Below, piece after piece: positions 13,101 to 43,602 of a stretch of DNA of 44,420 nucleotides. The stretch is taken from NCBI GenBank assembly GCA_002269645.1, contig NIVC01004487.1, forward strand, positions 1 to 44,420, given 5' to 3'. The notes beneath the pieces were generated by a model, which was not told the origin of the DNA, searched no databases, and was given only the letters and a program-made list of their open reading frames with translations. Source of the DNA: Macrostomum lignano (lineage: Eukaryota). The position numbers were made by a program, and so were the translations under genes. Every line of letters begins with the position of its first letter. Positions within the stretch are counted from its first letter, which is position 1.

Positions 13101-16100
13101 TCTGGTCTGGTCTGGTCTGGTCTGGTCTGGTCTGGTGTTGGTGTGATCTGGTCTGGTGGGTTTTCATGTGGTTCGATGTGTTTGGTGTGATCTGGTCTGG
13201 TGGGTTTTCATGTGGTTCGATGTGTTTGGTGTGATCTGGTCTGGTGGGTTTTCATGTGGTTCGATGTGTTTGGTGTGATCTGGTCTGGTGGGTTTTCATG
13301 TGGTTCGATGTGTTTGGTGTGATCTGGTCTGGTGGGTTTTCATGTGGTTCGATGTGTTTGGTGTGATCTGGTCTGGCGGGTTTTCATGTGGTTCGATGTG
13401 TTTGGTGTGATCTGGTCTGGTGGGTTTTCATGTGGTTCGATGTGTTTGGTGTGATCTGGTCTGGCGGGTTTTCATGTGGTTCGATGTGTTTGGTGTGATC
13501 TGGTCTGGTGGGTTTTCATGTGGTTCGATGTGTTTGGTGTGATCTGGTCTGGCGGGTTTTCATGTGGTTCGATGTGTTTGGTGTGATCTTGTCTAGTCTC
13601 TACAAAGGTGGCTAGGATAGGGATAGAGCTTCACCTGTCAAGAAGCATTACCTGTAATCCCGACACCAGTACATCTGTGATGCTGCCAATGACTGTGATA
13701 AAGTCGAATATGTTCCATCTGTCCCGGAAGTAGTTCTAAAATTTGGTGAAGCAACGTGACGTTTGGAAATCTTTAGAAGATACATTCGGACATGCGCAGA
13801 AATTTCTGCAACTTGAATTTTTCATAAAAGTGCAGCGAATGCCGATTGGCTGTTAAAAGTTATTGAGCAACATATTATGCCGGATAAAATAGGTATTTAT
13901 GCTATAAAAAGACTTACGTGTCTGACAGCCTGAAAACTTTAGTAATGTATGTAAGACATCAGAATATGACGCATATCTCGCTTGTTTAACACTAGATAGA
14001 TGTTCCCTATCAAGTCACTATTCACCTACATATGATATTGGTAACAAAGAAAAAATCCGTAAAAAGTGCTGCATCTAGAGCTGGATGCTGGATCAGATAG
14101 GGCCCAGCATAACTGTTAATCCGCATACACTTTATCGCGACAACAGCGACAACAACTAGCACGCATTGCCGACGTCAAGACTGCAGGGTTCAGACAACGT
14201 GAACTTTGAGGGCCCTGGGGTCGCTCAATCATTCACATACGAGTGTGAAAGCATGCGCTTAAACAGCCAATGTGCAGGATATTTTATGGACAGGCTGTCT
14301 GTCAAGTGCAAATTTAATGAATGCTCAGGGCGATGGTGAGCCACTGGGTATAATTCCCTTTGCTACCCTATTTGTGTCAAAATCTACGCATTTGAATAAT
14401 TGCAATTAGTAATGTCATTATGTTGAACTCCCCACAAATGTGCGAAAAACAGGAGTACAGTGAGTGATGTCGGGTACACTGGGATAGTCGATCACATGTA
14501 AATACTGTGTATAAAACGGTTCAATTTCGAGTGTTAACTAGAATAACCGTAACCGAATGTACAGAATAGTAAATTATTCACCAGCAGTTTTGCATGCTTA
14601 GAAATGAATAACACAATCCCAAACAGGTGTAGACAATTAGAGGCTGGAGACTGCGGGGGACAAGGCGTCAGACTCAGCGCAACTATGATTAAAAAATGAC
14701 ACCACAAAAAATTAGCACGGCTCCGGTTGCAGCAAGTTAGGAGCAACTCGATGTACCTTGGGTCCAAATGCCAGGATTTTGAGTATGCACTCAACAGAGA
14801 ACATGACAGTGAAGGCTGAGTTGAGGTACACCAGGGTACTGCAATAGTGCTTGTACGCCTGGTGCTCGGGATCTTCCAGCCCGTCCAATGTTTGAGTCTC
14901 GCGCCTGTAGTACTGGGCACAGGCAACCGCGGGGGCAGAGAGGGAGGAGGAGCGCAGAAACGGTAAACAATTGTACGGCGGGTACGCCAGTTACAGTAAA
15001 GTACGTCAAAGGCAGTAGTATAATCAGTATCAGTAGTATAAGTAGTATACATGCTTTGAAATCTAGCGGGGCAAAAAATTGAAGGCCATCACGGCTGCGG
15101 CATGGGCCGGTGCTCCAGATGGCAGTTAGGATTACTTTGAGCACAATCTAGCTCAGACTGAGCAGCTGGCACAATAAAAATATTTAATAGCCAAGAGGTA
15201 AAAAAGTTAATAAATGCACAGAAAGAGTTTACAAGTCTTCTCTCGCTCAGCTTCAATGAATAATGTTAAGCAAAGTAATTTCGGATAGGTGGGAGGGGCA
15301 GCCTACAACTTAGCTGAACACTCCGCTGCTTGCATCCGGCAATCTTTGCTGCTTTTTAATTATAAAACTCAAAGAAAAAAACGGTCTATGAAAGAATAAA
15401 TGAGCAAAACTACTGAGAAAGTTGGTCTCTGCCATGCTTTGCAGATCTGGTGCAAAATCTCTTCAGTTCAGAAAACGAAGTTTAGAAATGAAACAAGCGT
15501 GACAAAGGACTAATTCCTTTTCTCGAAAGCACTCTTCCCTGTCCTGCCTTGAAGCAGAAAAGTTAAGCTGGGTTAACCAGAGCTGAGGCTAGCAGGCAAA
15601 ACAATGGCTGTCAGCAGCGGGCCTCAAATTTTCTAGCTTTCTTACCTCAGGGGCCTGACAAAGAGCTGGGTAGAGATAGAGAGATAGGAGAAAGGGGAGA
15701 GGCGAGGGAATAAAGGAGAAGAGAGTAGAGATGAAGTAGGAGAGGAGAGAGAGATTAGAGAGAAGAGCGCTGAGAATAGATATAGACGTTGAGCGGGCCG
15801 GATTGCTATTGTGAAGTTTCAAAGGTCCCGAGCATCGGATAGAAGGGCTTTGCAGACAACATGGGCCCCATGGGCCTCTTATCCGCTCTAAATCAAACCT
15901 AACGCCTGAAGGACCACCTTTCCAAACGAAATCAAATTCGCGAAGCGAAGTTGGCGGCTCAAGCAGCTCTACTAAAAGTTAAATGCCATTTTTTAGAAAA
16001 GGCTGCAGAGCAGATGAAAAGATTGGCTAATTCTGCTTTAAGATTGTTCAAGAAAATATATAAAACAGAAAAGAAATCGAATAAAAACTGAACAGAAATA

Positions 16101-43602: not shown

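Follow-up and report, generated by a model that had tools for sequence, protein, structure and literature searches.

The 44,420-nucleotide (nt) stretch of DNA analysed here, the window (contig NIVC01004487.1 of the flatworm Macrostomum lignano, positions 1-44,420), held the greater part of a Cav2 alpha-1 calcium channel gene of the cacophony/CACNA1A-B-E type. Read on the minus strand, the gene ran from IS4 to the C-terminus, and the part of repeat I upstream of IS4 fell outside the window. It contained five clusters of tandemly duplicated exons, which were named IS4, IIS34, IIP, IIIP and IVS2, with the letter A, M or B for the individual exon. The Cav2 identity, which had already been proposed in a first-pass annotation of this DNA, was borne out by a search against solved structures. 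The best matches were human Cav2.1 (1758 bits), Cav2.2 (1740 bits) and Cav2.3 (1727 bits), compared with about 1370 bits for Cav1, about 540 for Cav3 and about 500 for Nav. The top database matches to the protein were all “type A”, P/Q, N or R channels, and the closest protein was Mlig012532g2 of M. lignano (P0121), with 75-97% identity per exon. Spliced translations gave the filters TMEGW (I), TGEDW or TSEDW (II), TGEGW (III) and TGESW (IV), which form an EEEE selectivity filter, and every S4 within the window carried R or K at each third position. An AID-like sequence for beta-subunit binding followed IS6 in the I-II linker, the EF-hand region lay within one large exon whose matching homologues carry PF16905 and PF08763, and an IQ-like sequence was located at 11081-11224. 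As judged from its sequence, the gene is a Cav2 alpha-1 gene, nearer to Cav2 than to Cav1, Cav3 or Nav.

Duplicated exons were sought by a tblastn search of all minus-strand open frames against the window itself (44 kb), and the positions of the clusters were mapped onto Cav2 homologues. The search recovered every duplicate with E values from 2e-4 to 5e-14, well above chance in 44 kb. The values were 1e-7 to 7e-14 for IIS3-S4, 3e-11 for the domain III turret and P-loop and 3e-7 for IVS2; the IS4 duplicate was recovered at 2e-4, over a 17-residue core only. In total, 11 tandemly duplicated exons were arranged in five clusters, with three exons in IIS3-S4 and two in each of IS4, IIP, IIIP and IVS2. 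The first-pass annotation had described one exon pair per channel domain and 16 isoforms. All eight exons that it listed were present on the minus strand with plausible splice sites (AG acceptor in 8/8, GT donor in 7/8 and a GC donor on 36942-37054), but it had missed the exons at 36200-36312, 33699-33822 and 32904-33021. With all five clusters, the possible combinations number 2x3x2x2x2 = 48, which is an upper limit. Over the full set, AG acceptors were found in 11/11 exons and GT donors in 10/11, the exon at 36942-37054 having the single GC donor. No I-II linker duplicate of the Drosophila kind was detected by the self-tblastn search of the window, and no e37-like pair was present in the window, where the EF-hand sits in one large exon.

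All of the exons described below lie on the minus strand. In the IS4 cluster, IS4_A (43512-43602) encoded S4 together with the preceding linker and the last part of IS3 between the splice sites cag|G...A|gtaagt; it was 91 nt long as assembled and 92 nt as expected. IS4_B (42288-42388, 101 nt) was a canonical IS3b-S4 exon with five S4 charges. It read in frame into the constitutive IS4-S5 exon (40214-40359) once the single base that the assembly lacks there, between RAMAP and LLQIAVL, was restored. The IIS3-S4 cluster was directly downstream of the constitutive IIS2-S3a exon (37304-37416), which ended in phase 0 (..FDCT). It consisted of three alternative IIS3b-S4 exons of 113 nt: IIS34_A (36942-37054) with the GC donor AG|gcaagt, IIS34_M (36200-36312), and IIS34_B (35019-35131), whose S3-S4 linker was charged (YRRDA). 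The third base of the split Arg codon was given by the constitutive IIS4-S5 exon (34315-34446).

The IIP cluster was located between the constitutive domain II turret/P1 exon (33962-34034), which ended in phase 0 (..LLTVFQ), and the constitutive exon (32463-32563) in which IIS6 ends and the II-III linker begins. IIP_A (33699-33822, 124 nt) encoded the domain II filter, the P2 helix and most of S6, with the motifs LTSEDWN and FGRY, and IIP_B (32904-33021, 118 nt) was the canonical filter-to-S6 exon (LTGEDWN...FGNY). In domain III, the constitutive IIIS5 exon (19386-19546) ended with two bases of a split codon and was followed by two exons for the turret, P1 helix and filter. IIIP_A (18803-18955, 153 nt) had the filter motif TGEGWN and an extra turret cysteine (AQCFRY); IIIP_B (18415-18558, 144 nt) had the canonical TGEGWP and a weak acceptor (caacaaag|G). 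The constitutive IIIS6 exon (17701-17902) came next, and then the constitutive exon for the III-IV linker and IVS1 (17111-17275), ending in phase 0 (..LILMMK). Both IVS2 exons encoded the IVS1-S2 loop and S2. IVS2_A (16170-16280, 111 nt) matched the “FH/FY” type of vertebrates and nematodes, and IVS2_B (14757-14912, 156 nt) belonged to the “YY...ILAFGPK” type, its loop being longer by 15 residues. The constitutive IVS3 exon (13652-13735) was in phase 0 after either of them.

Each single choice per cluster spliced in frame to the constitutive neighbours, for IS4 after the base correction described below. Together with the flanking constitutive exons, the domain II exons gave continuous reading frames in 6/6 combinations and the domain III/IV exons in 4/4. 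The matching splice phases that had been claimed earlier for every pair were thus found once IS4_A was corrected by 1 nt, but not in the sequence as assembled, where IS4_A had 91 nt and IS4_B 101 nt. The lengths of the IS4 (92/101 nt), IIS3-S4 (113 nt for all three) and IIP (124/118 nt) exons were not multiples of three, and the inclusion of two copies or none shifted the frame, as seen by spliced translation for IIS3-S4 and IIP and by length arithmetic for IS4.

A second Cav2 locus of M. lignano, Mlig012532 on NIVC01000272.1 of the public assembly (L001), was used for comparison. The window gene and L001 were 89% identical over 659 ungapped columns, and each was about 72% identical to trematode Cav2. 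At the nucleotide level only the exons could be aligned (75-90% identity), and the introns were unalignable. The possibility that the two loci were orthologues from two species was rejected; the M. lignano protein P0265 (UniProt A0A1I8FJ67) was identical to the window in in-frame stretches across IIIS4, IIIS5, IIIP_A and IIIP_B. The comparison points to paralogues that arose by duplication within the macrostomid lineage. P0265 itself is a short frameshifted ab initio model from a noisy older assembly, in which IIIS4, IIIS5, IIIP_A and IIIP_B are strung together, and is not a real isoform; at the level of sequence it shows both domain III exons in an independent assembly.

The alignment to L001 also located the base missing from IS4_A, at AGG-CGCTG opposite L001 15061-15152. 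With this base restored, the exon was 92 nt long and specified the same amino acid as the paralogue exon at 29/30 codons. One base was likewise missing from the constitutive IS4-S5 exon, GGC-CCCTTG in the window versus GGCGCCGCTG in L001, a defect that would truncate every isoform. The window therefore held two coding indels in about 5 kb of coding sequence, and the IVS2_B exon of the paralogue (L001 35884-36038) also carried a 1-nt deletion. Because the constitutive IS4-S5 exon shares the defect, an assembly error is the likelier cause of the IS4_A frameshift, and both frameshifts in the window are most likely assembly indels. At the deletion in the L001 IVS2_B exon, the gene model P0121 leaves the frame and stops, so that the annotated protein is most likely truncated by an assembly error; the exons from IVS3 to the C-terminus are still present downstream in the paralogue (L001 36661-44703 aligns to the window).

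Counterparts of 8/11 alternative exons were found in L001, in the same order and with matching splice sites. Their lengths were 92 nt (IS4_A), 101 nt (IS4_B), 113 nt (IIS34_A), 113 nt (IIS34_M), 121 nt (IIP_A), 118 nt (IIP_B), 120 nt (IVS2_A) and 156 nt (IVS2_B). Each window exon was compared with its counterpart by Nei-Gojobori counts of nonsynonymous (pN) and synonymous (pS) differences, and the pooled constitutive exons gave a baseline of pN 0.040 and pS 0.53. Values of pN 0.016 and pS 0.82 were obtained for IS4_A after base correction (L001 15061-15152), and pN 0.029 and pS 0.56 for IS4_B (15752-15852; 97% identical). IIS34_A was 89% identical to its counterpart (20260-20372; pN 0.067, pS 0.68), with a GC donor in both, and IIS34_M was 84% identical (21053-21165; pN 0.138, pS 0.76). 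For the IIP exons, IIP_B was 95% identical (24786-24903; pN 0.023, pS 0.70) and IIP_A 70% (24271-24391; pN 0.21, pS 0.45), the L001 copy of the latter also reading LTSEDW. IVS2_A gave pN 0.19 and pS 0.79 (34977-35096), and IVS2_B, 92% identical, gave pN 0.046 and pS 0.61 (35884-36038). Five alternative exons were as constrained as the constitutive exons. Since synonymous sites were saturated (pS 0.45-0.82) while pN was only 0.016-0.21, the comparison indicates long-term purifying selection on the eight shared alternative exons. The earlier proposal that the copies are functional alternatives gained support in this way, with 8/11 exons kept between unalignable introns and pN far below the saturated pS. 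The gene model of the paralogue, P0121, contained one exon per cluster, including exons of the IIS34_M and IIP_A types.

The other three exons were compared mainly within the gene. IIS34_B was the most divergent IIS3-S4 copy, 53-66% identical to all others, with pN 0.24-0.33 and pS 0.67-0.83 against copies A and M. IIIP_A and IIIP_B differed by pN 0.36 and pS 0.87. The single IIIP exon of L001 (33428-33571) was 64% identical to IIIP_B (pN 0.21, pS 0.75) and 61% identical to IIIP_A, and both window copies differed from it by pN 0.21-0.27. IIS34_B and the IIIP copies are old, and the low pN relative to pS (0.21-0.36 versus 0.67-0.87 in these comparisons) suggests constraint. Their reading frames remain open, with splice sites and core motifs intact, and their functional status is probable. 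The reading of the duplicates as alternative coding exons is well supported by these comparisons for eight exons and plausible for three.

The alternative exons differed at positions of the voltage sensors and of the pore; for the pore, residues were counted over the Cav proteins in the comparison set. IS4_A was without the first S4 arginine, and its S4-S5 region started with VTGFES versus VSGIPS. In the three IIS3-S4 exons, the S4 charges were kept and the S3b segment and S3-S4 linker differed. IIP_A had a serine instead of the glycine before the domain II filter glutamate, a glycine found in 116/117 other Cav proteins with the paralogue as the sole exception, and its P2-S6 loop and S6 were rewritten. 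In IIIP_A, the domain III turret was rewritten and one cysteine was gained. The filter glutamates were unchanged in the IIP and IIIP variants, and the changes affected neighbouring, otherwise invariant residues, with S in place of G, N in place of P and R in place of N.

Comparison with other animals showed that three of the clusters are not confined to Macrostomum. The Cav2 locus of the annelid Ridgeia piscesae (L002) contained IS4 exons of the A and B types, two IIS3-S4 exons, and IVS2 exons of the FY and YY...ILAFGPK types. Its IS4_A-type exon (tblastn match at L002 6814-6906; 92 nt from its splice sites) was 77% identical to the window IS4_A, and one IIS3-S4 exon (L002 28751-28861) was 74% identical to IIS34_A and had the same GC donor, AG|gcaagt. 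The FY-type IVS2 exon of Ridgeia was 111 nt long. The Ridgeia exons equalled those of Macrostomum in length (92, 113 or 110, and 111 nt), although the position of the GC-donor exon within the IIS3-S4 cluster differed. The YY-type exon of Ridgeia (L002 54854-54970) read ...FSIES LSRFLRSDQR in frame, with another reading ending at |gt after a 1-nt shift; this anomaly is either an assembly indel or the mark of a decaying exon. A GC-AG donor on one IIS3-S4 exon was common to both Macrostomum paralogues and the annelid. Because a sea star and a leech had GT donors on their single-copy IIS3-S4 exons, the GC donor marks one member of the pair. L001 also had a GC donor after the IIIS4 exon (AAG|gcaaga) where the window has GT, and such donors may be rather frequent in the genome.

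The moth Manduca sexta was compared through annotated protein isoforms, and three of these (P0124, P0129 and P0140) differed exactly at IS4 and IVS2 (FH versus YY type). A sea spider carried the arthropod alternative IS4 type. The sea star Patiria had an IVS2 pair whose members were 70% identical to each other, and this pair probably arose by an independent duplication. Trematode gene models used the IS4_A, IIS34_A, IIP_B and IVS2_B types. No second exon copies were found at the sites that could be examined in one Cav2 gene each of a leech, Limulus and a rotifer, results that say little, as the Limulus and rotifer loci were cut off before or at IVS2 and the leech gene is one of several. The leech Helobdella has three Cav2 genes (P0131, P0144 and P0155), and the locus examined (L003) had single exons at all five sites; a possibility is that gene duplicates replaced the alternative exons there. 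Neither the Ridgeia locus nor the Manduca isoforms showed a duplicate of the IIP or IIIP exon or a third copy of IIS3-S4. Among the lineages compared, both pore-loop pairs and the third IIS3-S4 copy appeared in Macrostomum alone. On this distribution of homologous exons, the IS4, IIS3-S4 and IVS2 pairs are old and not unique to Macrostomum, and the domain II and III pore-loop pairs look lineage-specific. The first-pass annotation had considered its set of four pairs to be new; this did not hold for IS4, IIS3-S4 and IVS2, which orthologues also have; of its four pairs, only the domain III turret pair had no match beyond Macrostomum in the lineages compared. What may be new for a Cav2 gene is the presence of the IIP and IIIP pore-loop pairs and of three exons in the IIS3-S4 cluster.

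The reading that we favour, and regard as likely, is that each mRNA takes one exon from each of the five clusters, the exons of a cluster being interchangeable alternatives. The exons within each cluster would be used in a mutually exclusive manner, as their duplication and splice anatomy suggest. The cell could then draw on two IS4 voltage sensors, of which A is without the first gating arginine, and on three IIS3b-S4 variants with distinct S3b segments and S3-S4 linkers. The pore would come in two forms in domain II (filter, P2 helix and S6) and two in domain III (turret, P1 helix and filter), and the IVS1-S2 loop with S2 likewise in two. Transcripts with double inclusion or skipping of IS4, IIS3-S4 or IIP exons would presumably be removed by nonsense-mediated decay. 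Because the IIIP and IVS2 exons have lengths that are multiples of three, another mechanism of exclusivity would be needed for these two clusters. By analogy with the Drosophila IS4A/B exons and with alternative exons of Cav1.2, Nav, Cav3 and NALCN, the splice choice may tune activation voltage, kinetics and permeation.

Several observations weigh against this reading. The frame does not enforce exclusivity in the IIIP (153/144 nt) and IVS2 (111/156 nt) clusters. A search for docking/selector pairing in the IIS3-S4 cluster of the window and L001 gave only weak inverted repeats (75-93% complementary, 14-23 nt), none of them common to both, and a search of four clusters for intronic elements conserved between the paralogues gave only chance 12-14-mers. 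No transcript-derived Macrostomum proteins for the gene were returned by large protein searches, in which the matches seemed confined to the length class of the query. As assembled, IS4_A had a stop in every frame, and its start and its S4 part were read in different frames. Six-frame reading found neither a counterpart of IIS34_B in L001 21160-22760 nor a second IIIP exon in L001. The replacement rates of IIS34_M, IIP_A and IVS2_A were 3-5 times those of the constitutive exons, though still well under the synonymous rate, and this faster evolution fits either specialisation or relaxed constraint. The window IIP_A had an Arg in the IIS6 motif FGNY, giving FGRY, at a position where N was found in 109/109 Cav proteins; either the gate may be strongly altered, or the constraint on this copy may be relaxed. 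IIIP_A had TGEGWN for TGEGWP, where P follows TGEGW in 212/217 proteins and N in none.

A rival reading is that only the ancient, well-conserved exons are used (IS4_B, possibly IS4_A, IIS34_A and/or IIS34_M, IIP_B, IIIP_B and IVS2_B) and that the fast-evolving or lineage-specific IIS34_B, IIIP_A, the window IIP_A and perhaps IS4_A are decaying pseudo-exons left after tandem duplication. The frameshift of IS4_A as assembled, the missing paralogue counterparts of IIS34_B and of one IIIP copy, and the substitutions in the invariant FGNY of IIP_A and at the near-invariant P of IIIP_A all favour such decay, as do the ratios of IIP_A to its counterpart (pN/pS about 0.47, dN/dS 0.37). An open frame is itself a weak argument for function at these lengths, since an exon of 37-50 codons stayed open by chance in 12-63% of substitution-only simulations. 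On the other side, the same kind of 1-nt deletion was found in a constitutive exon, and IS4_A conserved 29/30 codons at a pS of 0.82. Every suspect exon retained AG/GT sites, a frame-compatible length and core motifs, among them LTLFTV.TGEGW and the R-x-x-R spacing of S4. The IIIP copies differed by a pS of 0.87 but a pN of only 0.36, and each by a pN of only 0.21-0.27 from the paralogue exon, and the gene model of the paralogue uses the IIP_A type. Taken together, decay of these exons appeared unlikely.

The duplicates could also be artefacts, in that the assembly might have left haplotypes uncollapsed or wrongly joined a paralogous locus. The genome of M. lignano is difficult and partly polyploid, and the assembly does carry indel errors. 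This explanation is effectively refuted by the copies themselves, which were 40-63% identical in protein with saturated synonymous sites and were duplicated as single exons without their neighbours. The same clusters also occurred in the same order in L001 and in an annelid, and both IIIP exons were present in the M. lignano gene model derived from an independent assembly. A last alternative concerns only the IIIP and IVS2 exons, which might be cassette or additive exons, some transcripts containing both or neither. The frame is kept when both exons are included or skipped, and the ab initio model P0265 joins both IIIP exons. But that model is a frameshifted prediction from a noisy assembly and not a transcript, a channel with an extra or missing P-loop or S2 helix would lose the 24-helix topology, and the homologous IVS2 pair of Manduca is annotated as substitution isoforms of equal length. 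Cassette use was thus judged very improbable, and one exon per cluster remained the preferred reading for all five clusters.

Mutually exclusive exons of this kind are known from several channel genes. In Drosophila cacophony, a Cav2 gene, only the IS4 and I-II mutually exclusive pairs are reported (PMC11828482, PMC12370356), in agreement with what the first-pass annotation had said of this gene. The Drosophila IS4A and IS4B exons are one S4 charge apart and alter the activation voltage and active-zone targeting (PMC11828482). They resemble the Macrostomum IS4 pair in being adjacent homologous exons, each about 33 codons long, that cover the last part of IS3, the linker and IS4 and differ by one positive S4 charge. 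The Drosophila exons are 99 bp long, in contrast to 92/101 nt in Macrostomum, and Drosophila is without the other four clusters. The arthropod alternative IS4 was only 35-44% identical to the alternative of Macrostomum and the annelid (TFDQP...KLVTGFES), and the two may or may not have a common origin. Among vertebrate sodium channels, SCN exons 5a/5b (5N/5A) are tandemly duplicated, mutually exclusive IS3-S4 exons of 92 nt that are ancient and have been repeatedly lost; double inclusion or skipping shifts the frame, nonsense-mediated decay has been proposed, and the choice is controlled by conserved intronic RNA pairing and Rbfox2 (PMC12772994). Their length equals that of IS4_A, but they belong to another gene family, and no conserved intronic elements were found in Macrostomum.

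The Cav1.2 gene resembles the window gene in having several mutually exclusive pairs over different repeats, each of which swaps a transmembrane segment. Besides exons 8/8a, Cav1.2 has the pairs 21/22 and 31/32, and vertebrate Cav2 has e37a/e37b; the segments concerned are IS6, IIIS2 and IVS3, and e37 encodes the C-terminal EF-hand. Unlike the window gene, these pairs include no swap of a selectivity-filter loop and no three-exon cluster. Exons 8/8a of Cav1.2 (CACNA1C) have been described as mutually exclusive (PMC3060452). The closest precedent for IIP and IIIP was found in other channel families, in exons 12a/12b of invertebrate Cav3 (domain II turret) and exons 15a/b or 31a/b of NALCN (domain II/III P-loop), which are mutually exclusive (PMC4436565, PMC3557258, PMC7382465). 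NALCN swaps a filter residue (E/K) and Cav3 swaps cysteine-rich turrets, whereas the IIP and IIIP exons keep the filter glutamates and change their neighbours. In the literature searched, whose coverage was limited, no description was found of pore-loop alternative exons in any Cav1 or Cav2 gene, or of IIS3-S4 or IVS2 pairs in invertebrate Cav2.

Other features of the window lay in the introns and at the 3' end of the gene. A non-LTR (long terminal repeat) retrotransposon (25669-29425, plus strand) was located antisense to the gene inside the large II-III-linker intron. Its open reading frame of 661 amino acids (26608-28593) matched endonuclease (PF14529, PF03372) and reverse transcriptase (PF00078), a downstream open reading frame gave a weak RNase H match, and the region had 55-60% GC versus about 47% elsewhere. 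Minisatellites and microsatellites occupied introns at 13138-13594, 7529-8342, 16690-16997, 18099-18241, 24745-25065, 30172-30380 and 31961-32418, with repeat units of 44 nt x10, 57 nt x14, 39 nt x7.6, 41 nt x3.5, (GACA)80, (AGAC)52 and a 14/28-nt array, respectively. Several of these repeats yielded long spurious open frames, and the IVS3-IVS4 intron consisted mostly of the 44-nt tandem repeat. The 39-nt family (16690-16997) is a dispersed repeat, because it was also found at L001 2859-3326. At the 3' end of the gene, a long open frame on the minus strand (2795-4267) was rich in poly-Q, poly-A and poly-S. Part of it (3484-3613) aligned weakly (69% of nucleotides) to L001 44574-44703, which suggests that this frame encodes the distal, low-complexity part of the channel C-terminus.

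In most invertebrates, transmitter release is triggered by the channel of a single Cav2 gene. The question of how it serves many types of synapses has so far been approached mainly through the two exon pairs of cacophony. The exons described here indicate that the voltage-sensor pairs (IS4, IIS3-S4 and IVS2) cross phyla, from flatworm to annelid and insect, with IVS2 also in a sea star, and that alternative exons for the pore loops of domains II and III may be an addition of one flatworm lineage. M. lignano is a laboratory model that permits transgenesis, so that exon-specific expression studies and knock-outs are feasible, and the corrected exon map, with its 11 exons and two assembly frameshifts, helps the annotation and cloning of flatworm Cav2 genes, including those of parasitic flatworms. 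It is proposed tentatively, as a possibility still short of an expectation, that alternative splicing of the Macrostomum Cav2 gene switches not only the voltage sensors but also the pore. If this is true, the alternative exons of domains II and III would give channels that differ in permeation, block or sensitivity to toxins and drugs. They would be the Cav2 counterpart of the pore switches in Cav3 (exon 12a/b) and NALCN, and with the three ancient voltage-sensor clusters added, one gene could yield as many as 48 channel variants.

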